From Oikopleura dioica (lineage: Eukaryota; Animalia; Chordata), in assembly GCA_907165135.1 (NCBI GenBank), contig OU015567.1, positions 4,712,001 to 4,776,000 on the forward strand: a DNA stretch of 64,000 bases. Reading direction: 5' to 3'. The notes under the pieces were generated by a model. The model ran no database searches, was not told the origin of the DNA, and saw nothing but the letters and a program-made list of their open reading frames with translations. Made by a program: the position numbers and the translations under genes. Below are positions 2,079 through 49,700 of this stretch, in pieces (position 1 is the first letter of the stretch; each line of letters opens with the position of its first letter).

Positions 2079-5193
<3,115 letters not shown>

Positions 5194-5664
5194 AATTATT
5201 ATTTTAATAAATTAAATTAAGAAAATCACAAAATATCGAAAAAATTATTCTCATTCGAGAAGATTTTGTAGGAAATAAATCTCCTGATCATCTGTTTATT
5301 TTTCAAAGCAGAAAAAAAAATCACTGCTTATTCGAAAGTCATAGAAACCATATTTATTTTTCCTATAGAAATTTCCTTCAGAGATCAATAACGTTTATGC
5401 AACTAGTGAAAGCATTTTGTCAAAAAATAAAATTAAGAGAAATTTTTGAAAAATCAAATATTGCTTATGATGAACCTTCATAATTTCATGCGATCAGTAA
5501 CTTACCTTCTTATTCTGATTCTTTCGATTTATTTAGGTAAAACTATCACTGATCGAATCAAGAAATTTCATTTTCAGCTTTATGGTTGTTTACGAGTTTT
5601 TACGGTGGCAAAGAAATTTATTCATTTTCACGAGAAAGTTCTCAATAGAAGATGAACGAAAGTA

Positions 5665-12925: not shown

Positions 12926-14155
12926 TTAAACGAGGCAGCCCATTCCGTGGAACTTTTGGTTGGTGAAGGCTACGTACTGGTTGTAGAGCATTTTCTTGGT
13001 CTTTGCTGGAATCTTTGATCTTCTAGCTCTGGCTTCTTGTGGCGTTTCTCCGGCGACTGGGTAGTAGATGGTGGGGAAGAGATCGTCTTGGCAGACGTAG
13101 GCGAAGTGAAAGCTGCGAATCGACTCGATGAAATTGCCGAGAGCGTAGCAAGGATCGCTGTAGTCCGTCGTTGGTGCTTTGAAATCGGTTGGGCTTCCAA
13201 CGTCAGCTTGCATCTCGCACGTAGGCTGGAGTTCGCCATATTCATCAGTGTAAAATGGCTTGCTGTTGTCGCGCATCCAGACGAATCTGCTGAAGATTCT
13301 CTGGATGAAGATCGCCTAAAAATTATGATTACTCATCTCGCGCAGCATGCCCCGAGGCGCAAGCCTGGTAAGCTCAGTCGGTAGAGCGTTGGACTCTTAA
13401 TCCAACGGTCGCGGGTTCGAGCCCCGCATTAGGCTTACTTTTTGGCCTGAAGATGTTCTTTGAAGTGATCGTGTCCATCAAAGACTTCGCTCTTCAAATC
13501 TTCGAAAGCGTTGTTGATCTTGTTCCAGGCGAGAAGATTCTCAGGCAGGGGAACAGTCGTGAACGTTGCTGTGAAGCCCCTGTGGACGACGCTGTTTTCG
13601 TTGGTTTTGAAGACGAGGGTGAGATCCTGACGAGTTCCAGTGACGTCCGCAACGGGTTGATTTCCACAATAGCGGGCGAGCTCGGCGTTGCCGTCTGGAC
13701 CGTTGAAGACCATCGCAGCGTCGTTATCGCACAAACCAGCGATGCCTTAAGATTTTGGTTGAAAAATAGTCGCGAAGAGATAGACCGAACCTTTTTCTTC
13801 CACATCGAAATCGCTGAATGCAACACTGACAACATCCAGCTCGGAAGGTGTCGTCACGTAAACTCGATAGTACATATTCGGCTTGTATCGTTGGTAGCCA
13901 CTGCCGTCGTCGAAGGTCGGGACGGACCAGGTGAAGGTTCCATCGGCGGTGGTACTCAGGTCTACGGTGATTTCTTCCGTGTAGTCTGGGACCCAGATTC
14001 GCTCGTCCTCCAAAGCATTATCGGATTCTTGAGCGACTCGGGCTGTTGCCAAAGCTGCTAGTGACCAGGAAAGCTTAAAAAATATTGTTTTTTTCTCATC
14101 ATTTACGCTCATGAAGAATATCTCTCATATTTAATTCAGGTCTTTTTACCTTCAT
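12926..14155 (-). CDS. Secreted single-CUB-domain protein with uncharacterised C-terminal region
   Basis: MK|LSWSLAALATA signal peptide; CUB motifs FSDFDVE, CDNDAAMVFNG, LARYCG, LTLVFKTN..HRGFTATF. The last splice junction is ambiguous. Confidence 0.8.
13363..13435 (+). tRNA. tRNA-Lys (anticodon CTT)
   Basis: Cloverleaf: acceptor GCCTGGT/ATTAGGC, D-arm GCTC/GAGC, anticodon stem TTGGA/TCCAA with loop CTCTTAA, T-arm GCGGG-TTCGAGC-CCCGC; followed by a TTTTT terminator. Confidence 0.93.
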
Positions 14156-34900: not shown

Positions 34901-34945
34901 TTCTTCGAAGTCTGCTCCCGAGATTTTACTGTTTCTTATGCCTAA
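31922..34945 (+). CDS. ASAH2: Neutral/alkaline non-lysosomal ceramidase
   Basis: GVGKGDITGP, MMGYA, HSRLFARCF, GTHTHSGPAGY, NWFAVHP, NLGDVSPN, PAMG..F.AG.TDG, YEAGSVIYG, and C-terminal GNYRMCYRG..F..S..F.V motifs. Confidence 0.92.
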
Positions 34946-35304
34946 AACTGTTTTGGTCAATAAATCTTTTATTATTTTTTCTTATTATTTCATTCAATGG
35001 ATCGGGTTCACAGTTTGAACTTCAGAAATTCTGACTCAGAATGGTAAACCCGATTGCTCTCAAAATGCGTTAAAAGAGTAAATTTAATCCCTTCAGGAAA
35101 AAATACAGGTGTGAAAACGATTAATCCTTTCAAAAAAGATAAATTGAAAATAAGTGTTTGGATTGTCAATGCTTCGGAACTTTGCGAAAAGTCGGCGGAA
35201 AGGTCGTTCTCTTCACAGAGGAAGTTCTCTCTACCCGGAGCATCCACACACAACAGGCTGATTTAGAGAAGGAGAAAACATGGAAGAAAAAGGTCACCAA
35301 ATCA

Positions 35305-37416
35305 ATGACCCTTGCTAAGCATGGTTTTGCCACGAATATTCAAATATCAAATTATTTGACTTTTGGTTCTCTCTTTTGGCTTACAGTCATAATTATAGCG
35401 AATTTCGTCTCTTTGGAGAAATCAAAAAGTGTAACGACTTTTCTGACCTCAACTTGCCACCGAAACTACAAGCGATGTGTTCAATTTGAATCCATTGACA
35501 TCTGCGGCCATCTGATGAAGAAATGCCACCAAACAAAAGAGTTTATACTTCCAGAGCCAGTTTCCCTTATAAAACCAAGCCCCATCGATTCGGAAGCATT
35601 TACCGAAGAAGACAACAGAGTGAATTTCCGCCGATGCCGAAAGAAAAAATTTTACGACCAAAAAGTGTGCCGCCATCTTTGCTCAAACACGCTGATTTTG
35701 AAATCAATGAGGACTCATCCGATTTCACCATGTGAATCAATTTGCTTTCAACTGACGCGATCGTTCGCTTCTGCTGGAGATGTTTGCCCGACTGAAAAGT
35801 ATTGCATAAATGGCTGTCCGTGTCCCTTTTATAAATGCGAAAGGACGGATAAAGACCAAAAATTCGTCCCTGTCTTCGATTTGGAGAAGCGTGATTACAG
35901 TCGATCAATCGAGCGGAGGGATGAAAGCACAGAAAGAATCAAGAATGACGCTGTTATACTGTTTGATCCTTCGGGAACCCAAAAAACCAACAAACAAAGC
36001 ATCGACATTCAAGCAGGCGATCATTTCGAAGATTTCAAGCATTATGAAAGTTTTTTCTTTTCTTTTTCGTACACTTAATTTTGCTCAAAAAGCGAATATT
36101 CTAAGTAGACAAAGATTAAACAGCAAAAAAGGCAATTGGTGCTGCATTTCTTAACGGAGAACATTACTTGGTCGATCAAAGAGGAAGCTTGATTAGACTG
36201 GGAGAGAATGGGAAAATCTCGTTAATTGTCAAAAATCGTTTTTATGCCAGGTTTTATGAATTAATTATTTGCAGGGCTAACGAGTCTTTGAAGAACGGGA
36301 AATTTCGCTTTTCATTACAGCTCTTCCATAGGAACCCACGATATAACAATCAGAAATGAGGAGAAAAACACAACTGTCTTTCCTGTTGTTGTCATTTGAA
36401 AACGGTCGAATATTATTTCAGGATTTTTATCTTTGTTTTAATTTCGACCTTTGAAAGTTCTCCGAAAAGTCGCCCAGATAAATGCTATTATTATGCGCCT
36501 GATTATAATTTAAATAGATTCGAAACCGCCCAAGGTAAAAATCGTACTTTTCAGCTGTTTCATTCGTTCCAGGTTATATCGCAAGCAATCATTTCAACGC
36601 TCGAATGTCTTCAATCAGCTTCCGCGGCATATTCTTCCTGATGAGCATGAGGCTCGGCACAAACTGGATAACTCTTTCGAGAACGATCGCGCTTAACTCA
36701 ATTCGATCAACGGAACAGTTGGAAAAAGGCTGGCGAAAGGATAAGGTCGCCCTTCCAGCAATGTTCCGGGACTTTGACCCCGTGCACGTGATTCCTCTGG
36801 AATGGATTCGAGAAAATTTTTTTTCAGAGAAAAATTTTTTTTCAGAGAAAAATTTTTTTGAGAATCCTAAAAGATCGATCTTGGTCAGCTGATGCTTGTC
36901 CTTGTAACGAGAAGCATTGGACTTTCGAATATGCAATATTCTTTGTTACTCGAAAAAGAAGGGAAATTTCTGACGCTCGGAAATGAATGGATCGGAAATC
37001 TGATCAAGTACGAACAAGAGTCGCGTTGCTATTCTGGACTTTTTGCGCCGAAGGATTTTGCGTACTCGAATGAATTTGGAACGAACAACGATGAGTGCGA
37101 GTATTTTATAAATGCATTTCAGAATAATGACCGGATTTATCTTCAAAACATCGTCTTTGATACAACCTTTGAAATATACTTCGATTTCGGAAAGGATCAT
37201 ATTGAAAGAATTTTGTTCGGAAAAAATCCTCTTGCGATCCCCGAAAAAGATAAAATTGAGCTCGATTTTCAGCAACAAAGAGCAGAGAAAAAAATGCTCG
37301 TAACAAGCAACCCCTTTTTCAAATTCCACGATGATGTCTTTCCCAATTTCGCGAAAAACGCAGTTGGTATAATTCGCAAATTTCCACTTTCAGCTAAGGA
37401 TCAGAAGTACTGCTAG
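35305..37416 (+). CDS. Uncharacterised type II membrane protein with CP..C..GCPC motif and beta-propeller-like C-terminal region
   Basis: TM near the N-terminus; DVCPTEKYCINGCPCPFYKC; AFLNGEHYLV; C-terminal ORF 36892-37416. Middle exons not fully resolved; frameshifts possible. Confidence 0.55.
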
Positions 37417-37469
37417 TTTACCGGTCCTTTCTAACAATTTCTGAGCCTTTAAATAAGCTAGCAGTTTGT

Positions 37470-38272
37470 CTCCGCCGTATCCACTGGCGATTATTCCGGA
37501 TTATCCATTCGGGTCTTTCGATGAGGCATTGTTCCACATTTCTTCATTCGAGCTTGATTTTAATGAAACGCAGAAGCTCAATCTTGAAATCAAGGAAAGG
37601 GTCAAAACTGAATAGCGCCTCCTTGCTCCATCCGGTCCGTAGCAATGGGCGGCAATGGGCGGCACAAGGCGGTTCTAGGCGGCGCTATAGAGTTACGCCC
37701 AATTTTTGTGCAAAAGCGGTTTATAATAATTTTTTGATTCTTTGAAGAAGAACTCAAAATTGCAAGAAGCGGCTAAAATCCTCGAGTTTCGATCATTCAA
37801 CGAAAAGTCCATCTTTGAAATTGATCTGCTCAAAAACAGTTCGATGAAAATATCGTCGGATTTTTTTCACGAATCCATTATTTTGGATACAAATTCAAAC
37901 GACAACTGGCTCTCTCTTGAGTTTATTTTCGAAGTCAAAGACGACTTTTTGCTTTTCAAAATCGAAGGAACAAAACGAAAAATGAAGGAGCTAAGAAAAA
38001 TGGACGAAAAAAGAATAAAACTCCTCAAATTTGACAACGAAAGCGAAATTAAAAATGTGTTTTTCTTTCAAAATGGACCAAGTCAGATAAATGTTATTTT
38101 GCATGAAAACAACAAACGACCCGAACAATATGCACTTTTTGGTGATGGATTCAGAAATGACGATGAAAAAATACTTATTCCAGATAGCTCTGCATTTTCT
38201 ATCGATCAATCGAAGCCTGCTCTTGTAAATGGCCAGTTGCATCTTTTCGGCAGCCTGAAGGATCCAAACAAT
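37470..38272 (+). pseudogene. N-terminal part of a Kelch/beta-propeller-like gene, cut off by a repeat element
   Basis: ORF 37742 ends ...ALVNGQLHLFGSLKDPNN with a GTAGG donor, and the repeat starts 5 nt into the intron. Confidence 0.5.
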
Positions 38273-38277
38273 GTAGG

Positions 38278-38680
38278 TAGCATTGGGTGGTGTAAATATA
38301 AATTTGCAAGAATTGCAAAATCTCGTCCTTTGCATCAGTTGAGTCTTATATTTTGATAAGTTTGTTGAAAGGGGCATGAAAAAGCGATAGAAAAACAAAA
38401 ATAGTGAGTTTGGGCAGTCGTTGTTGATTACACGCTAGGTCAAAGGTCAAAATTTGATAACGCCCTAGAGGCCAGGCGCATTGATGAATTTCAAAAATTT
38501 TTTTTCGAGGAAGATTATCGTGACTATGAGAAGCTCGCTTCGAGTTTTGAGCGTGATCGGACGTCGGATATGGAAGTTATGTGATGGAAGAGAAAAACAA
38601 AAATCGGCGACACGGCGATTACGTAACAGCGCGGCGGCCGCGCGGCGGCGCTGTCCGCCCGCAAGCCTAGCCCAGCGCTG
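38278..38680 (+). mobile_element. ~400-bp hAT-like non-autonomous repeat, copy 1
   Basis: Diverged inverted homologue of 55627-56038; imperfect termini TAGCATTGGG / CCCAGCGCTG; no TSD found. Confidence 0.65.
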
Positions 38681-39020
38681 AGAGAGCTCAATTTTTTCTT
38701 TCAATTAACTATTTCTAAGAAAGTACTCGATAATTAGGTAAACTTATTAATTTAACTACAGTTATAAACTAAAATTGTGTATTTTTTATTTATACTGTAG
38801 AATAAGGCTCGCCAAAAAAAAAAGTCGATGTCGATTCTCCCTTACGAATTTTATCTTAAAATGATCCCCGTTCTTTTCTGATTCAAATGAGTGTAGAATC
38901 TACAGTGAGACAATCATTATTATTTCAATTTCTGTTTTTCTATTTGATGGAAATGAAGATAACATTTGCGAAATGCAAGTCGCAGCTACTCATAACACTC
39001 AGGTCAATTATATGACCGCT

Positions 39021-40129
39021 TCAATGCCTGCTCAAAATGCTGAACCGACTGGTACTCTCGCCAATCTCGCTCCCAACGTTAAAGACGCCAACAAGTTGCA
39101 TGTTCATCGTGCATTCCTTCAAAAGCGAGCCTAACTTCTCACGCTCAGCTTTAAACCTCTTCAATTTCGCTTTCGAAATAGCCAGCTTTGACCTTTATCA
39201 TCCTCAATCGACCTCTTGTTTAGCTCCTCTTCCAGTTTCTCAACTTTGCTGGAATTTCCACATGATTAAAATTATTGGCAAACATCTAGCGGCTACAGTA
39301 GATGTATTTAGCTCATCAAAAAGGAATTTTCTCTCAAAAAAACACCTAAAGCTTGAAATTCAATCAAGTACTGATCAATTGAGCGACTCGACTCTTATCC
39401 TCCAAAGTACAAAAAGGGCCCATCGATTAATGTTCCTCCCTTCAAAAAAACCCGGCAAAGATAAAACGCAAAAAATCCAATTTCCTCAATTTTTTCCTGG
39501 AAAGAAGATATGTTTGGTGCTCATTTTTTGTGATCTTCTGGGCATCTGGTAGCGGCTAAATACACAATCTTTGAAGAAGAAACCGCAGAATTGTGTAAAA
39601 TAAATTTGAATGATGGATTTGAGAGGATTCAGATTGACTTAGCTTATTAAAATGATTGAGCGAGGAAGGGCTCGTTTATGAAACTCGGAGCGTACACATT
39701 TGATGAATAAATTAGCTCCAAAGAGTGCTTCCTCTGCAGTTTTCACTCATTTTATGCCCCCCGAATACCCTGAAAGTTCACTCGTGATTTTGCCCATAAT
39801 CGAATGATGGCACTTTTGATGATCTTGGCAAACTTGATTTGATCTATCTTGCGGTTTTCAAAAAGTCGCGTTTTTCAAATAATCCTTTCCGTTATCTTTG
39901 AAGCAGTGGCAGCCGTTGTTTAAGTGCTTTCCGAATCGGGGAACGTCTTGAAGGTACATGATGAAGTTTTTGACCATTTTGATTTCCATCACTTCTTCAA
40001 GCTCATTGTCAGGGGGTATCTTTCTTCAAAAGCGTGGAAAAGATCGTCGTCGGAATTTTCTGCTAGAATTCTCTCAACTGGAAAATTTTTGAAACTCGAG
40101 CTTCTCAAAACAAGCTCGATGGAAAACAT
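39021..40129 (-). pseudogene. Degraded uncharacterised coding sequence
   Basis: Protein-like stretches (MFSIELVLR..., EVMEIKMVKNFIMYLQDVPRFGKHLNNGCHC, SKVEKLEEELNKR) broken by stops and frameshifts. Confidence 0.35.
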
Positions 40130-40330
40130 AAAATAATTCAGAAATTACAGCAATCTGAAAAATAGGTCACAGCGGGGCGCTCATCGAGCGAGGCGCGCCG
40201 CTTCAATTTGATGTTCTACCCTTGAAAGGTTGAACTTGTGATGTCCTGGAGCGCAAATTGTCAACTGATGCGTAAAATTTGAACCCTCAGAAATCGAAAA
40301 TCTTTTTTCGAAAGAGGCAAAATATTAAAA

Positions 40331-40810
40331 ATGGAGATTCAAAAGAAAACTGATGAAGAAAAGAAGAAAGAAGAAATCGCAGAAGCACAAGTGAAAAAGA
40401 GAATGGATCATGGAGGAATTGCCAAAACGGCAGGAATGCCGCTAGAAATGATTCAGAGAATGGAGCCATTCAAGCTTCCAGATAAGTATTATAATTTAGA
40501 TTTTCTAACTCAAAATTTTCCAAATTTTTGCTATTTGGTTAAAAAAATTAAACGTAGAAAGCGTGATAAAGACAAATTAATCAATTTAGCGAAAAAAACT
40601 TGTGAAAATCATATTTCGCTCACTGGTTCGAAGGCTGATTTATCAGTGCAAAAAACAATCATCCCTGACTTCAGAATCAATCAGAGTGAAATTCTGGACA
40701 AATCGAGCGATCAGGCTTTTCGGGCGTCAAACAGCTCGTTTAAACGCAACAAAAATCGGACAAAAATAGGGAAAAATCAGTGCCCGCGAAAATCTCATCC
40801 AAAAATTTGA
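40331..40810 (+). CDS. Uncharacterised basic 159-aa ORF, convergent with the transposase-like gene
   Basis: ATG-started ORF downstream of a GC-rich segment (40170-40205); no recognisable domain. Confidence 0.4.
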   Translation: MEIQKKTDEEKKKEEIAEAQVKKRMDHGGIAKTAGMPLEMIQRMEPFKLPDKYYNLDFLTQNFPNFCYLVKKIKRRKRDKDKLINLAKKTCENHISLTGSKADLSVQKTIIPDFRINQSEILDKSSDQAFRASNSSFKRNKNRTKIGKNQCPRKSHPKI

Positions 40811-40827
40811 TTTTTTGTTAGATTTAA

Positions 40828-41095
40828 GGGTGTCATCATCGACTTCGTTTTTTTTTCTGCGTCAGTTAAGGTTTCTTCCGCTCATAAATAACATCTGATT
40901 TTTCGTCCAGTTTTTAATCAATCCTTATTTTGTAACATAAATTTGGCATCAAAGTAAATTTATAATCTATAAATCCCCACGATCGCTTCAAATGATACTT
41001 CAAATTCGACTTTTACCAATTTTCTTCCGGTAGCTGTGACAAAACTACGAATTTAAATTTTTTCATCTTTTGTCAGAGGCGACCCTTCGACACCC
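40828..41095. mobile_element. 268-bp MITE candidate with TTAA TSD
   Basis: TTAA|GGGTGTC ... GACACCC|TTAA; the TIR is only 7 bp. Confidence 0.5.
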
Positions 41096-41190
41096 TTAAT
41101 TCTCGAACATTTTAAGTCACGTGAGCTTATTTCTAATATTCCTGTTTGACGTAGAGAACAAAATTTTCAAATTATTTATAAGCAATTATT

Positions 41191-44100
41191 TTATTTGAAA
41201 TAATCATTACAATGGTAGATATTTTCGGCCCAGAAATAACGATGAATTTTACGCAGTTCAATAAAATCTTCTGCAGAAAAAGTATATTTGTTAATTAATT
41301 GTTCGATATTTGCTGTCGCGAGCATCTCAGAATTGGCTAAAGCCAAAGGACCGCAATCGTTATCGTATTGTGGAGTAAATGGCGGTAAAATGCATTCGAC
41401 TTCGGTATTCCAAAGATAGTCGTAGATTTCAATGAGGATTTTTCCAACTAAATTTAAAATTTTTATACTTAAATTATGAGGTCATCATACGATAGTGCCA
41501 ATAATCATCCGGAGAGTCGGGAACATGATCGCGAAGAATAATTTTCTGAGAGTCTCGTAAGAGTCCAACAGCAAAGAAATGACCAACTTTTCTTCCTGAT
41601 GCGATAAATTTTCGGTCTTTATGTGCATTTTCGTTCAGAAGAAATGTGAATATTATTCTTTTGAATTCTCGCGCGGACGTCGGATAAAAAAATTTTATTC
41701 TTTCCAAAATCGTTGATTTATCCTGTTGAAAAGACGTAAGAATTGCACTGGTAATGTTGGGATCCACAATCAAGACATCATCTGACTGCTGATCATTCAT
41801 GTTTTTGACGAGATGACTGAAGATATCTTTCTCAGAGTTCAGAATGGCATTCTTGAAGTTATGAAAACGGAGATTGAGAGAAAATTAAGACATTAAGAAT
41901 GCTTGATTTTGAACTCTGATCTATAAAATATGTTTTATTTTTGTAGAAGGAATTTTTTCTCGCGGTTATCTGACGATTGTATTCAAGATCATTCTTTCGC
42001 TTCATTCCTTCGATTTTTCGAGAAACAGCTCGATTGTCGATTTTCAATTGAGGCAAGACGAATTTGTTGACTGAATAAGGCAGTCCATGTTTGAGAGTCG
42101 GATAAGATTTTTTTAGGCTCCTCTTCATAGACATTTCGTCGCTGAGTCGATCTGTCATCAATCTGCTCTTCAGTTTCGTTTTCTTCTTCAGTCTCTTTTC
42201 CAGTGAATAAGCTTTTGAATTCTTCAATTAATGTGCTTTTTTTCTTTTTTGCTGGAGGACTTGGAAGATAATTGGTTTGATTTTTCTTTGGATCTTCACG
42301 AACATATTCGACAACTCGCTCACTAACAGAATGATCGTATATTTTGCAGTTTTCGAATTCTCCACTGTTGCATTGCGTGCAATCAGGACTGCAGATAGTG
42401 TTGGTTAAGACCACTTTCTGCCTGTCGCTGTTCCAAGTTGCCATTCTGACACGACGGCATTGGAATGATCCAATGAGCTCTTCCCTTGGCAAAATTGGAT
42501 AATTGTCCAAATTAACAAAGAATCTCTCGAAATATGTGTCTTCAGGCCTTTCGTTCTTGAGTCGTTCTTCTTCCAATTCAAGTCCGCAAATCAACGAATC
42601 AATATCAAGCCCCTCATCACGCGCGTTCAGTCTCTGTGCGGTTGCAGGAACCATAGAATGGTAGGCATCAATGATACTCAAAGATTTGGATTTTAAATTG
42701 AAATCGAAAGTCTAAACCTTAAGAACAGGCAATTAAAAAAAATTTCACCGAATCTTTCCGTGGGCTGGAGCCTTAAAGCGTATCGTCGAACTTCTCAGAT
42801 TCCGAAGCATCGCCAAGGAATACTTATTTTTAAATTCTGATCCTTAAATATGGTCACAATTCGGTTCGCATCGATAAATCAGAGAGGGATGACCAGGTTC
42901 GTGAGGACTAGGTTCGTTAGACTAGGTTCGTAGGTGCCATGTCGGAGAAAATAATTGGTGTGACTAGGTTCGTGGAAATATGATTTTATATGGATTTTTT
43001 TGTATCGTCGGCATTTTCGGACAGTAAGGGAAATGGGTTGATAACTAGGTTCGTGGGACTAGGTTCGTGAGTTTTTAAATTGCAAAAATTTTCGGGCAAT
43101 AAGGGAAATTGGCTGATGACTAGGTTCGTGTGACTAGGTTCGTGAGTTTTTAAATAGTATAGATTTTCGGTCAGTAAAGGAAATGGGTTGATGACTAGGT
43201 TCTCGGGACTAGGTTCGTGAAGACAAGGGTAAATTTCTACTATTTAAAAACTCACGAACCTACTCACACGAACAAAGTCCCACGAACCTAGTCCCACGAA
43301 CCTAGTCATCAATCCATTTCCTTTACTGCTCTTAAATTTTAACCATTTAGAAACTCACGAACCTAGTCCCACGAACCTAGTCATCAACCCATTTCCCTTA
43401 CTGCCCTAAAATATAGCCCGATTTCAATACTCTGGCAGAACCAACCACGAACCTAGTCCCACGAACCTAGTCTTCACGAGCTAAGTCGTCATTCCTATAA
43501 ATCACAGCTGAAAATTTTATGACCATTCCTGAGTTATCTGAGCAAATAACGATATGTTTGTCCGCAATGTCGATACCTTCGTCAGAAGCTTTACGAAAAG
43601 CAATGGTTTCAAGATCTTTTATGTGACTGGTTGACTTCTTCTGAGATATACCATGGATGACAAATCGTCTCCAGGATTCGGTAAGATCATCGAAAATCGT
43701 GAAAAGATATGTTAACGGAGCGATTGGTCGAGTGTTCTGAAATTAAGTTTGATTTAACTAACTAACTAATAATCAATACCAAATACTGTCCTTGAGTTCG
43801 CATTGAAGGAAGAAGTGTAAATGATCGGCCATAATCGAACTAAGTTAAGTTTAAATGATCTGATACTAATTTAAGATAAACCTCAACATAAATGAATTTT
43901 CGATCAATCTCCACATCCCCAGCCCGGCAGATAATTTTGTTCTCTTTTGCATGAACCTTGTCAAACCAATGAGCTTGGATTTCTGACAAGCTTTGAATGC
44001 AAAATTCTTTCGCTCTTCTGAAATCCATCATGCATTCCTCGGAGCCTCTCGGTATCCAAAGAGTGTTTCCATGCGCCTTTTTATCAGATCGAAAATGTGG

Positions 44101-45666
44101 TAGTCGATAGATCTTTCCAGTAGTCTGCACGTTTTTAAGCAGGTCATTGATTGCTTCTTCAACTGACTTCGAAGAGCATTTGTGATGACATTTAACACAA
44201 CCATTTTGCTGAGTTGAGTGAGCGAAGCAGCCTTGTAAAAATTTTAAACAAGAAAATGAAAACAAACCTACTTGAGTATTTTTTGCTGTCTGCGCACATA
44301 ATATTCTCAAAAGAATTTGTTCCGCAGACAGTTTTTTCCAGAATCGAAGACACTGTAATCCATTTATGAGAGGACCGAGATTCCTGCGGTAAATTTTCAC
44401 GGATAATTTGATTGAGATGCACTGTAGATGCCTCCGCATTTGTGCAACTCGAGCAAAGACATTGGTGCTGCCAGAAATGATCGGAAGATCTTGTTATAAT
44501 ATTTTTCGGTCTGACCTTTTATAGCTTATTTAAGTCTGTCTTTCAATTATAAGAAATTGCATAAAACTATTATAAGCCTTTCCTTGTTAATTAAGTATGG
44601 TGTGAATTTTGAAGAAATTTCATTAACTTCAGCGTAGATCTCCGGCAAACTTTTACAAAGAACATATTTTTGAACCCTCATAATTTGAGCGCTCTTCTGA
44701 CCAATTTTTTTTTCCTCATAAAACGCACTTTTGAAGTTTGACAAATTAAATAAATTGTAAAAATTCTTGCCTGTTGATATAAATTTCATCTAAGAATTTC
44801 AAATTGGATTTTTGTCAAACTCTCCCATACTGATCATAAAAGCGTTTGTGCAACGGAGTGCATTTTAATGGGTCGATTATCATCATCGATTGCTTTCCAA
44901 CAACTGGAGTTGACGAAGCGTACCAAATTTTTACTAAGGCCTCTTTTTCATCATCTGTAAGAGTTTCAATACGTTTTTTGCGAAGATCAGGACAGTCAGG
45001 GCCATTTTGGAGTTTTTCTCGGTCGGATATTGCCGTTTGAACCCTAAAGCGAGAAACGCCAATAGAGTCGAAACTTCTCATGATGAATTTTTTGACAAGA
45101 GGTCCAGGGGTTTCTGGGATAAGTGACGCTAGAATACGTCTCGAGACATCATGATTACGAATTTTTTCGATCAGGCCGCCGATTACTTCCAATGGTACAA
45201 GATTTAGCGCGTATTCAACGCAATGTCTCGTTTCAGGATCCAATGGATCAAGGATTGTTTGAACTCGCGCAACTGTCGTTTTTATCTTGTCTGAGATGTC
45301 GTCATCATTGTTATCCTGGGACAGTTGTAAAGTCAGCTCTGTCTCGAGTTCCGAAGCTTCCAGTGAGCGTTTTTTTGTTTGATAAGATTTTCTTCGCTTT
45401 GCACTGTCATATTCTGGTGTCTTATCATTCTCAGTGCTGATTCGTTCATCATCAGCCAATATATCCTCTATGTCCTTCTTCTGATAAGACGAGTATGGAT
45501 TTTTCGAAAAATTAGTTCTGCAAATCATCGAATGACGGTCAAATAAGGTGATCGGAACGGTAGTTTTACAGGCCATGCAGACAATTCCAAAGCATTTTTG
45601 TTTATGCTCCCGATAATATTCATTTTGCGACATCGTTTGAAGACAGTATGGGCAGGTTCTTTTCAT
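41191..45666 (-). CDS. Spliced transposase-like gene: Cys/His zinc fingers + DDE/DDD-type catalytic core + Cys-rich segment + Ulp1/C48-like cysteine protease
   Basis: CPYC..H..C / CMAC..H..C fingers; QCLCSSC; KFIY|FDYGRSF; YISEEVNQSH; VICSDNSG|SEFKNKY; APAHGK; protease motifs GHFFAV, ILRD, PQYDNDCG. One junction after HGK could not be put in frame. Confidence 0.7.
42882..43496. mobile_element. 615-bp foldback MITE made of GACTAGGTTCGTG arrays, inside an intron of the transposase-like gene
   Basis: Left half gactaggttcgtg units, right half cacgaacctagtc units; 8-bp TSD ATAAATCA at 42874-42881 and 43497-43504. Confidence 0.85.
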
Positions 45667-45874
45667 TTTGTGACCTTGACGGGCTACAAATAATTGAAAA
45701 CAAGCGAAATATCTAATGACGTACATTTAGATTTGTTTTTTGCTGGCATAATTATTGTTTGTGGAGCTGCATACCGTTTCGGAGCGCAACCGAAAACCAA
45801 ATGTTCATTGTAATTTTCGGGCCCTGTGAATGTCCTTTTACACTTTCGGCAAGTGATCCCTTAATTTTATTTAA

Positions 45875-46704
45875 GGACCCCCTGTCAAGTTTGACGATTT
45901 TAACAAATGGATTTGATTAGTTCTGAGAATCATTCTTCTGTATAACGGTCGGAGTCAAAAATAAGGGACTCTTTTTGATCCAAAATTTTCGAAAAAAGTC
46001 TCTTAATTTGGGTCATCAAAGCAAAAAATATGTCGCTGCAAAATTTTTTCAAAGTATAATTTTTGCAGCATAACCGAGAAAGCTTACTAGTCTCAGAAAG
46101 TGGGAATGACGACTAGGTTCGTGAGGACTAGGTTCGTTGGACTAGGTTCGTGTGACTAGGTTCGTGTGACTAGGTTCGTCTGACTAGGTTCGTGAGTTTT
46201 TAAATAGCAAAGATTTTTGGTCAGTAAAGGAAACGTGTTTGACTAGGTTCGTGGGACTAGGTTCGTGGGTTTTTGAATAAGCAAAATGTGGGATTTAAAC
46301 CAAATGTGAGTATATAAAAATCCAAATTCCACGAACCTAGTCTCACGAACCTAGTCAAACACGTTTCCTTTACTGACCAAAAATCTTTACTATTTAAAAA
46401 CTCACGAACCTATTCAGACGAACCTAGTCACACGAACCTAGTCACACGAACCTAGTCCTATGAACCTAGTCAACAACTCATTTCGATTACTGACGGAAAT
46501 CTTTACTATTTAAAAACCCACGAACCTAGTCACTCGAACCATTTTTCAAACATGGCTCCAACGAACCTTGCCCTACGAACCTGGTCCTCACGAACCTGGT
46601 CATCGGTCTCTAGAAAGTCCCCTTAATTGGATTTCTTTCTGCCGCTGATTTCCGGCATTTTTAGCCAAAAAGTTCCTAAATCACTTGACGTGGGGGGGGG
46701 GTCC
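45875..46704. mobile_element. TTAA-flanked MITE carrying a nested foldback element
   Basis: TTAA|GGACCCCCTGTCAAGT ... ACTTGACGTGGGGGGGGGGTCC|TTAA; TSDs at 45871-45874 and 46705-46708. Confidence 0.75.
46102..46610. mobile_element. Second copy (opposite orientation) of the GACTAGGTTCGTG foldback MITE
   Basis: Same asymmetric ends (GGGAATGACGAC.. / ..GGTCATCGGTCTC); near-perfect 8-bp TSD CAGAAAGT / TAGAAAGT. Confidence 0.85.
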
Positions 46705-46771
46705 TTAAACGATTTGAATGATTTATTATATACCAGTGCATTCTGCAAAGTGATCGTCGTTCTCACTGCTT

Positions 46772-49700
46772 CTAAACTCGCCACAATTTAAGCATTGAAA
46801 GAAGTTTGGAGTATCTAAAGAACGAGGTTGATGAAAGAACAAGTCGAATTCGAAAACCTTGCATCACGACGATTGGCCCGATCGGACGATAACCGGAAAC
46901 GAAAAGAGCGCTCAAAAAATATGAGGTCAAAAGTATCAAAATCAGCAATGCTGAAATTATTCCCAGAACGACAGCCATCACCAATCTTTTTTGAATCAAG
47001 ATATTAAGAAAGAAAAACAATAAACAAACGAATTCGCAGAAAAAAAAAATTTATTTCTCAGACATGAAAGCAGAGAATCTATTGTAAATATTTTCAACAC
47101 AAAAGATAATTATGACAAAAACTATAAATCTGATGTTGTTATTTATCCAGCGCACAAGACAAGCAAAAACTAAAATTGCGAGAAATTTTGGATCAAATAG
47201 ATAGGAAAGTATATGTTTTTCAAGCTGAAAGACTGTTTCTCCAGCAATTGAGAGCGGCAAGTCGATTCGAGTCAAATCCGTTGGAGCAGAGTCGCTTAAA
47301 ATCGATTAATCATCGGAAAAACCTTGATTTATCTAACCATAAATATCCACATCCGAACAAGATGATAATGATTTTCGAGAAAAGCATTGTCTTAACCTTA
47401 AATATGAATTAAAAAAAAATCTTTTTGCCAAAAACAACAGTATTTTAAATAAAAAATGAGCCAAAACAAACTAAACAAAGGAAACCGAGTACAATAAATA
47501 CAAAAGGCGATTTTTTCCAGATTTGAATTATAAGAATCAGACTAAGCAGAAGGAGAGAAATCCAAAGAAGTAAAATAAATGAGATAGTTTTATTTCCCAA
47601 ACATGCGACTAATTTTTGCCAGTATCCCGGCGAGAATATTTGAAAACCTACAAATTTATACGTGCTTGCAAATTCATCAAGCGCCGTAAATTCTAAAGAG
47701 GTAAGATTCAGCTCATTATCAATTATTGACAAGATTTGATGTTGAATTCCGTAATTTTCTTTCATTAATAATTCGAACTGATATGAATTTGTAAGAGAAA
47801 ACTCAATCTCATAATCATTTGAAATCGGTGGAATTGTCATATTTCGACTAGCAACAATAATTGCGTACGGTGATTGCCTTCTCTCGCAGCAGACAACTCC
47901 ATCTGAACGAGATTTTAAGATTATGTCGTCGAAATATATTCACCCGAATCCATTATACGAAAGGGGGTTCTACTGATCTGTCAATTGCAAAAGCTCCGAT
48001 TCCAGCCTCAAAGCAAATTTCTGTTTCAAGTGAATGAGCTCTTCCGATTGAGACTTCCTGTTGCTTGATTCTGGCTAATGAGTGTCGCCCGATTCCATCA
48101 AGCATCTTATTTTCTGGGCACAAGAAATTCAAATTTCCAAATCCATGACGGCAACTAAAACTGACTAGAATGGTCAACTCACAAAACATACCTCTCTCTT
48201 TTGAAAGTGTTAAATTTTCCATCAATATGATTTTTAATTATGACGGAGCCCGCAAAATCTGGTTTTTCGAATTTTTTTCCGGCGATTCGGCCTCGAGATT
48301 GCACTTCAACGCGATGAAACCGGGTAAGTCCGATCGGAAAAGATACTTTCACTGTAAATATAATTAACCGGCGAAAATGAATAAAAATATTTACAATTTA
48401 TCTTTAGACCAAGAAGCGTTTTTTCATTACTATAAGGGAGCACATTCGCATGATGGACTTCAAAAAGTCCATTTCGTACTATTTCTTCACAGATTCTTGT
48501 TGTTTCTTTATCACCATCTTTGGGGAAAGACGTTTGGGATCCTTTGCATAACCCCACAAAGATTTGCTCGGTGTGAAAGTCTAAATTCATTTTTATAGAA
48601 AACCAACGTATATCATTTACAGTCAGGGCTTCCAATTTCGGGCCTTTCAAATTCACGTTTTACGGCGAGAATCCGAAAAATAAGGCTTGGAATAACACGG
48701 ATTTTTGAGTAAATCCGCGAAAGAAAAAGTGAATTGAGAAGCTCTAATTGTACAAAATATGATAATTAAATGTTTGCGATAACAATGATAATTTAAAATT
48801 ACCTAATCCACTGCACAAATTTGTCCGCTGCAAAAAACAATGAGCCACTGTCGTGAGTTTTTTATAACGACTCATTTGCGTATCAAGTATCCAGGAAACG
48901 GTTTCCTGGTCAAAAGGGGCACGAATCGTCTTTGTAACATTTGAAATCGAGTCAAATATTCTTGCGTTGATTGTTCCAATATTTGATTCCAGTTTCAGTT
49001 CATTCTCCTTTAATTCTTCGATTACATTTTTGAGTGACTCTTCGAGAGACTGCGTCTCTTTATGACTGTAATACGATCCGAAAAAAGGACTTTTTAAAGC
49101 ATTCAATAAAAGATCAGTAAGAAATTCAAGAACGAATTTCATTCTGTTTAAAGAAATAACTGAATGCCATTCCTTGCGTACGCAAAGTCTAGGAGGTGAC
49201 TGTCGAGAACGCCACGTCGTTGTATTTTATGAATCACTTCGTCAGCAAGATCTTGAATGTGATTACTCGCCAAAAAATTTCGGGAGAAAAGTCCTGGATT
49301 GCTGATTTCATCATTGACGTAAACGCGACCGCCAATCTTAGTCCCGGTATTTTGGAGGCTCTACATATTTCGAGTTTCTCCTGTTCAACAATTTTTTCAA
49401 ATGAAAGTCGGTCTTCGTCGTGCATAAATTTCGAATACGTAAATTTTTCGTGGTAAGATTTCGGAATCTGGAAAAAATTTTCTTTTTGTGATTTCTTGGA
49501 GGCATAATAATCATTCTCATTCACATAAGAAGAGAAAGCTAGGATCACAGCTTGCACTTTAATAAATTAAATTTAAGCTAGTAAAAATTAATTCTGCCTT
49601 ATTCCTTTTTAATCATAAAATTTCCAAGAAGCGTTTTTCGAAGAAGAGATGAATCTGTATCGTCAAGAAAATGATGCAGCTTGATCAATCTTTGAAATTG

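Follow-up and report, generated by a model that had tools for sequence, protein, structure and literature searches.

What kind of gene is encoded at a locus of the chordate Oikopleura dioica from which zinc fingers, a transposase-like catalytic triad and a protease-like domain can be read in one order on one strand: a mobile element, a host gene derived from one, two adjacent genes, or a decaying relic? The locus lies on contig OU015567.1 of the Okinawa O. dioica assembly GCA_907165135.1, of which a stretch of 64,000 nucleotides was analysed; this whole stretch is referred to as the window, and all coordinates are window positions. A preliminary description, made from the letters of the sequence, had placed here (41191-45666) an intron-containing transposase fused to zinc fingers and a Ulp1-like protease. 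To judge from motifs, relatives and copy number, we give somewhat better than an even chance to the reading that the locus is a single-copy, immobile O. dioica gene, derived from a Sola-superfamily Asp-Asp-Asp (DDD) transposase with N-terminal C2HC fingers and a C-terminal Ulp1-type (C48) protease. Fusions of transposases with Ulp1 domains are known already; what appears to be new here is the Sola-like core as the partner.

Gene model

Searches were run exon by exon, not with the joined spliced protein, and splice coordinates, frame and length were computed by script. Six-frame translation of 41000-47400 gave a chain of open frames on the minus strand, from which a gene model of 13 exons was assembled (minus strand, 46864-41191), with a coding sequence of 3501 nt, 1166 amino acids (aa) and a single terminal stop. 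The model needs a frameshift nowhere, and no stop interrupts the exons of 863, 669, 350 and 326 nt. Runs of 303 and 240 codons without a stop, in DNA of 37% G+C, occur together with collinear similarity to a distant relative, and open frame and collinear relative are more than chance.

That minus-strand open reading frames (ORFs) join into one long protein, as the preliminary description had it, holds insofar as one 1166-aa frame could be assembled; the part of the claim that concerns the protease exons is weakened by the many alternative joins described below. The gene does not begin at 45666 but at an ATG 1.2 kb further upstream, at 46864, and two more finger exons found there bring the number of C-x2-C...H...C fingers from two to four (model positions 10, 33, 85 and 110). 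The motifs QCLCSSC, FIY(VE)/FDYGRSF, ICSDNSG/SEFKNK, APAHGK, the Cys cluster and GHFFAV/ILRD/PQYDNDCG all lie in the frame of the model. ISEEVNQSH, formerly listed among them, belongs to a different frame of exon 9, the model frame of which aligns with three relatives.

Relatives in marine plankton

An exhaustive protein search with exon 11 returned four proteins only. One was the ORF of the exon itself, and another, P0003, was discarded as a repeat artefact; the remaining two are an ORF of 49% identity on L001, a metagenome contig of 676 nt, and an ORF of 28% identity found on contigs from Tara Oceans. The profile built from the exon-11 matches added P0005 and P0006, on contigs that include L006, an 8.9-kb marine contig holding a whole gene of the family. 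Exon 11 was the only exon to yield significant relatives, with an E-value of 3e-12 for a profile of the relatives against it. A word search of proteins found nothing with exon 4 and, with exon 11, itself alone, on one contig; a scan of Joint Genome Institute (JGI) metagenomes with the family alignment gave no match.

Each window exon was also compared by BLASTP with all 313 ORFs of L006, where best or second-best matches were obtained for exons 2/3, 4, 6, 7, 10, 11, 12 and 13. These matches are strictly collinear on one strand of L006 (3124, 3768, 5255, 5537, 6498, 7199, 8068). Exon 11 alone is individually significant (1.4e-6), and the case for homology over the full length is made by the collinear order of the weak top matches.

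Overall, the relatives are 25-49% identical to the window gene. The three Tara relatives share 67-72% of their amino acids with one another; their synonymous sites have reached saturation, and the ratio of nonsynonymous to synonymous substitution rates (dN/dS) is about 0.1; by this measure the Tara relatives are evidently old lineages under purifying selection, and the pattern fits long-lived genes or long-lived active lineages, not a recent burst.

Contig L006 further holds, at 956-1915, a 319-aa ORF that by eye resembles a viral or retroelement envelope/fusion protein and has no Pfam match. A search of L006 for inverted repeats found just an 11-bp palindromic tandem array (157-432), distant from the gene.

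A Sola-like transposase core

The putative catalytic core is distributed over the five exons 7 to 11, all on the minus strand. Exon 8 (43780-43839), flanked by GT-AG introns of 42 and 43 nt, carries the first catalytic Asp (D1, EFDYG), and exon 9 (43529-43736) the second (D2, CSDNSG), in a frame backed by alignment with three relatives. Exon 10 (42749-42842) reads SEFKNK...IRFKAPAHGKI and is 74% identical to L001 over 23 aa. Exon 11 (42008-42676) contributes the third acidic residue (D3, IIDAYH), a Cys cluster of the form C-x3-C-x2-C-x7-C and a K/E-rich linker, and its frame is open as far as a stop at 41989. The three acidic residues are common to the window, L001 and the Tara relatives at an overall identity of about 25%: D1 stands in EFDYG in the window and in EADYS in L006 (VIYCEADYSSK), D2 in CSDNSG in the window and in LDNCSS in the Tara relatives, and D3 in HGK-IR-IID in the window, HGKSIVD in L001 and HSKSTID in the Tara relatives.

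The core was compared with the Sola1, Sola2 and Sola3 rows in supplementary file 5 of Majorek et al. (2014), by eye and without a scored profile. Around D1, the window block EFDYGRSFTLLPSMRTQGQYL agrees with the Sola3 block KDYCQKVLPSKFREGQKEYF in the pattern D-Y-x3-5-L-P-S...G-Q..Y-[LF] (KDYCQKVLPS in the Sola3 row). Around D2, SDNSGSEF of the window stands against SDNASSY in Sola3 and SDNCGGQ in Sola1 (pattern S-D-N-[ACS]-x-[SG]), and in the third block HGK..D stands against TSHG in Sola2 and CRGKD in Sola3 (pattern [HR]-G-K, then Asp). The spacing from D1 to D2 is 85 residues in the window, 83 in Sola3, 84 in Sola2 and 77 in Sola1; that from D2 to D3 is about 37 in the window and about 38 in Sola. 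An S-[IL]-H block of Sola2 and Sola3 is present in the Tara relatives and has been lost in the window copy.

A Ginger- or integrase-type core, an idea raised by the SDNGxEF-like and HGK motifs, was rejected on the grounds that there is no rve match, that a D1-D2 distance of 85 is too long, and that the Sola motifs fit better. Integrases of the rve type follow the pattern D-(about 52-60)-D-35-E, and the corresponding catalytic pair of HIV-1 integrase is D64/D116. Pfam rve did not match any exon, nor any of the relatives' ORFs bearing D2 and D3, and a search of PDB with the family profile gave no match and thus no integrase match. The Pfam models for MULE and KDZ transposases gave no match up to E-values of 1-10 on exons or relatives. 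There is no Pfam model for Sola, and Sola cores have been reported without a match to any Pfam family (PMC5751038). An AlphaFold prediction for the exon-11 domain alone, made with five sequences, reached a predicted local distance difference test (pLDDT) score of 42 and was discarded. Motif blocks and D1-D2 spacing in agreement with Sola2 and Sola3 thus support a Sola-like DDD transposase as the probable nature of the core, as opposed to MULE, KDZ or integrase, and on this point the preliminary description, which had called the core Sola-like rather than MULE or KDZ, is borne out.

The protease-like domain

The C-terminal exons of the model, likewise on the minus strand, encode the protease-like domain. 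Exon 12 (41491-41816) supplies its N-terminal part with His (GHFFAV) and Asp (ILRD), and includes a possible separate start at ATG 41800; exon 13 (41191-41447) supplies its C-terminal part with Gln and Cys (PQYDNDCGPL) and ends in a stop at 41193-41191 that overlaps an AATAAA. The residues follow each other in the order His, Asp, Gln, Cys with Ulp1-like spacing (H1052, D1069, Q1108 and C1113 of the model), namely 17 residues from His to Asp, equal to L006, 44 from Asp to Cys, against 50 in L006, and 5 from Gln to Cys.

Neither exon 12 nor exon 13 matches Pfam PF02902, any entry of PDB, solved Ulp1 and SENP structures included, or Atlas. The corresponding ORFs of the relatives do: L006:8068-8523 and L008:1500-1967 match PF02902 at 6.5e-7 and 4.4e-10, over the curated cut-off, and match the Ulp1-like SUMO protease structure 6dg4 at 4e-9, as well as ChlaDub2, SENP1 and SENP2. 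Exon 13 is the rank-1 ORF for a profile of these two ORFs, at an E-value of 3.1, and in the alignment with them the Gln, an Asp, Cys-Gly-Pro-Leu and an Asn are invariant; a D-D-aromatic motif seven residues past the Asp is also common to the window and the C48 relatives. In comparison with the relatives, the window protease retains the four catalytic residues, has HF in place of HW, and is shorter in its N-terminal half. Since its motifs align with those of Pfam-positive relatives, the window domain is taken to be a homologous, strongly diverged C48-like domain.

In the relative P0005, a single 407-aa ORF covers D2 and D3, the Cys cluster and, past an acidic linker, the first part of the protease, which makes the fusion of core and protease real in the family. 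The assignment of a Ulp1/C48-like domain to the same gene family as the Sola-like core is thereby supported at the level of sequence, and the earlier statement to that effect is upheld by relatives with Pfam-significant Peptidase_C48 domains in the same order and by this single-ORF fusion.

Upstream exons and public annotation

The upstream exons, also on the minus strand, lead from the start codon to the core. Exon 1 (46858-46864) is the short ATGCAAG with the start codon at 46864, followed by a 43-nt GT-AG intron. Exon 2 (46734-46814) encodes zinc finger 1 (CLNC...H...C), identified by translation and pattern match, and has its best match among the L006 ORFs in the upstream finger ORF; exon 3 (45725-45859) encodes zinc finger 2 (CRKC...H...C), with a sub-threshold Pfam zf-C2H2/C2HC match at an E-value of 0.003. 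Zinc fingers 3 and 4, an acidic linker and a helical region are encoded by exon 4 (44821-45683), a 303-codon open frame with its top L006 match at 3768-4670 (E 0.003). The intron that follows exon 4 has 31 nt and is uncertain. Exon 5 (44583-44789), an open 80-codon frame with a possible helix-turn-helix, is followed by a 67-nt GA-AG intron. Exon 6 (44272-44515) contains QHQCLCSSC and has its second-best L006 match, collinear with the others, at 5255-5530. Exon 7 (43882-44231) has a C..C HH.C motif, terminates in ...KFIYVE, and ranks first of 2574 ORFs for the relative's pre-D1 profile, at an E-value of 0.74.

In the public annotation, the interval 41989-46864 (5791-10666 of L005) is occupied by a gene of 728 aa and a gene of 221 aa, the latter being the exon-11 ORF. 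The 728-aa gene spans 46864-42745; it shares its start coordinate, ATG 46864, with the present model, and its final stop falls inside intron 10 of that model.

Contigs of the DNA run X3 carry no substitutions over the locus, with a single base of an A/T homopolymer missing at each of 41953, 42108, 42237, 42281, 42735, 44058, 44517, 45162, 45595 and 45736. As these deletions would disrupt the long open frames, they are taken as errors of the X3 contigs and not of the window.

Introns and insertions

Nine introns of the model are GT-AG (31-72 nt, plus one of 874 nt) and three are GA-AG (67, 686 and 191 nt). In the Okinawa O. dioica assembly, introns have a median length of 49 bp, and 11% of them depart from GT/AG (PMC8008620). 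The FIYVE/FDYGRSF junction spans a GT-AG intron of 42 nt, and the ICSDNSG/SEFKNK junction spans intron 9 (minus strand, 42843-43528), which runs from GA to AG, measures 686 nt and bears a miniature inverted-repeat transposable element (MITE). This intron had been seen before, and it was confirmed that its GA-AG join is the sole path retaining the second Asp, although GT-AG alternatives exist.

Two MITE copies were identified by repeat families and by alignment to each other. The copy in intron 9 (about 42880-43499) is palindromic, with 14-bp GACTAGGTTCGTG subrepeats and an 8-bp TGATTTAT duplication; its sister (46103-46611, strand not assigned) lies in the 874-nt GT-AG intron 2 and is likewise palindromic with 14-bp GACTAGGTTCGTG subrepeats. 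Both copies, each with an 8-bp target duplication and hAT-like, sit within introns of one gene. The summed contig depth of the MITE in run X3 is about 150-2,470, compared with about 9 for the exons, and is in places more than 100-fold higher.

Without the MITE, intron 9 shrinks to about 63 nt between its GA and AG, and ATGGTCATAA at one end pairs with TTGTGACCAT at the other in a duplex of -13.2 kcal/mol (z -3.4 against shuffles). In the GA-AG intron 5 (44516-44582), GGCTTAT pairs with ATAAGCT at -10.3 kcal/mol (z -3.6). Pairing of this kind was found in 0 of the 9 GT-AG introns of the gene. Intron 9 accordingly looks like a short intron with paired ends, about 63 nt long, that was present before the MITE inserted into it. 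In both introns 5 and 9, the 3' arm of the pairing stops 7 nt before the acceptor.

The junction after HGK, previously left open, reads best as the 72-nt GT-AG intron 10 (minus strand, 42677-42748), which yields HGKIR/IIDAYH in the predicted protein; the 49%-identical relative reads HGKSIVDSYH at this place. An intron near HGK is found after HGK in the window (42677-42770) and before the equivalent TPYHGK in L001 (95-190), a difference of place that is due to intron sliding or to independent gain and loss.

Copy number and mobility

Between the flanks at 46.7-50 kb and 38-41.3 kb, no inverted repeats were found beyond a T-run; a 14-nt inverted match (47035/40848), considered as a transposon end, is that T-run and was discarded. 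No 4-bp target-site duplications were found around the gene. The exons stand at unique, single-copy depth in the DNA contigs, and protein searches of called proteins found no second copy of the gene. As the gene is in single copy, lacks terminal inverted repeats, has 12 introns and was twice invaded by a MITE, it is most likely an old, immobile transposase-derived gene, a member of a diverged family. The mobile DNA-transposon family that the preliminary description had proposed is therefore not supported: termini and further copies were looked for, and neither was found.

Weighing the readings

If the locus is an immobile gene of this origin, the ancestral transposase would already have carried the N-terminal C2HC zinc fingers and the C-terminal C48 cysteine protease. 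In the present protein, the fingers and the helical region may bind DNA, the presumed RNase H-like core may bind or cut it, and the protease-like domain, if active still, would act on a partner or on its own protein by removing SUMO or a ubiquitin-like tag. Several observations weigh against such a gene, beside the comparison with Sola by eye. Searches of the window exons against Pfam, PDB and Atlas gave no match that reaches significance, and selection was measured among the relatives, not on the window copy. Canonical GT donors within exon 9, among them 43594 and 43576, give in-frame products too, with the second Asp deleted, and splicing from the donor after 43595 yields a product that reaches the stop at 42745 with exactly the 728 aa of the publicly called gene. 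The model requires three GA-AG introns plus one of 31 nt, and the public annotation divides the locus and passes over the protease exons. Only one partial read came from three oligo-dT RNA runs of the species; as these runs are without an organism positive control, the near-absence of reads is weak negative evidence.

The separation of core and protease into two genes is a possibility of some weight, if clearly a lesser one: a transposase-like gene would end at the stop at 41989, and a small protease-like gene downstream would begin at ATG 41800, possibly as its partner in an operon, with trans-splicing at the AG of 41817. The exon-11 frame does meet that stop, with an AATAAA about 50 nt further downstream, a good acceptor stands 16 nt upstream of the ATG, and the annotation takes exon 11 as a gene end. 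Moreover, the ends of the GA-AG intron 11 (42007-41817, 191 nt) are unpaired, and weak donors, if allowed, offer 226 in-frame joins from exon 11 to exon 12, both of which count against a single gene. A separate protease start behind the good acceptor is as possible as an in-frame join; but in-frame joins do exist, both parts are one ORF in P0005, and the domain order is conserved with L006. Less probable again, and in our judgement unlikely, is a silent, decaying relic that has lost expression and function and whose open frame is spurious, a product of the freedom to choose among many weak splice sites. Such a relic would agree with one partial read at most in three RNA runs, with the three non-canonical introns and the 31-nt intron required, with two MITE insertions, with a protease unrecognisable by sequence, with the loss of the S-L/I-H motif of the Sola rows and the Tara relatives, and with an annotation that stops at a stop in intron 10. 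It agrees poorly with four long exons free of stops, no frameshift anywhere, the retention of the catalytic residues and the paired ends of the two best GA-AG introns, and the RNA runs that speak for it have no positive control.

Two further readings would give the locus a more active part. We think it rather improbable that appendicularians keep a domesticated family of Sola transposases joined to SUMO/ubiquitin-like proteases, in which a finger-guided nuclease and a protease would act jointly on chromatin and of which this locus would be one expressed, functional member; its role might then lie in DNA breakage or repair tied to the extreme scrambling of the Oikopleura genome, or in MITE control. 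Least probable in our estimate is an autonomous Sola-like transposon of an undescribed family, with a deSUMOylase of its own that would counter SUMO-dependent silencing. The gene does keep the three catalytic acidic residues as well as His, Asp, Gln and Cys, relatives in other plankton DNA evolve under purifying selection, and Mutator and Ginger1 transposases can carry Ulp1 domains (PMC2836005); yet the gene has neither terminal inverted repeats nor target duplications, stands at single-copy depth with no second copy found, and is broken by 12 introns, two of them holding an unrelated high-copy MITE, while relatives of 25-49% identity with saturated synonymous sites do not point to a recent burst. 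A role in SUMO-dependent silencing has no support at the locus, and the counter-silencing module of the preliminary description is not sustained, the window protease being too diverged for any sequence method to recognise. The single-copy, immobile gene of Sola-like origin is thus retained as the preferred reading.

Surroundings of the gene

For about 6 kb downstream of the gene (34945-41190), the public annotation calls no gene. This interval contains several plus-strand ORFs of 150-300 codons, such as 35158-36078 (Cys-rich) and 40331-40810 (K/E-rich). Elsewhere in the window, a tRNA-Lys (CTT) gene lies at 13362-13436 on the plus strand.

Comparison with known systems

The Oikopleura members of the family seem to live on as diverged genes, rich in introns and present in single copy, which makes the family a candidate case of transposase domestication in a chordate whose genome is tiny and rearranges fast. 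The locus also offers a clean example of a MITE inside a pre-existing GA-AG intron with pairing ends, and exemplifies how such genes are broken by public annotation.

Sola1, Sola2 and Sola3 (groups E.10, E.12 and E.13 of Majorek et al., 2014) share with the window gene the DDD triad, the motif blocks, their spacing and the want of a Pfam match. The window gene differs in being without terminal inverted repeats, 4-bp duplications and further copies, and its membership is judged by motifs, not by a profile. Unlike Sola as described, it has four C2HC fingers, and a C48 domain that is fused to the core or lies next to it. A literature search, with Repbase and Dfam outside it, found no paper that pairs Sola1-3 with Ulp1, Peptidase_C48 or a SUMO protease, and among the papers listed by a search on Oikopleura and Sola, none names both.

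Like the window gene, Ginger1 (PMC2836005) is an intron-containing gene in which a DDE/D transposase is preceded by a zinc finger at the N terminus and followed by a Ulp1 protease at the C terminus, but its core is a Gypsy-type integrase (rve, YPYY, GPY/F) with a D1-D2 distance of about 55-60, whereas the window has a distance of 85 and no rve match. Mutator-like elements that carry Ulp1, which include the KI-MULEs/Kaonashi of plants and the MULEs of hydra and lancelet cited in PMC2836005, likewise combine a transposase with a C48 protease, and some of their lineages are immobile and diversify as gene families, as is proposed for the window gene; their transposase belongs to another superfamily, and the window has no MULE match in Pfam and differs in its motifs. 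With Ulp1 domains documented in Mutator-like elements and in Ginger1 (PMC2836005), a Sola-type core joined to Ulp1 would be a third independent case, and would strengthen the idea that proteases of ubiquitin-like proteins are generally of benefit to cut-and-paste enzymes.

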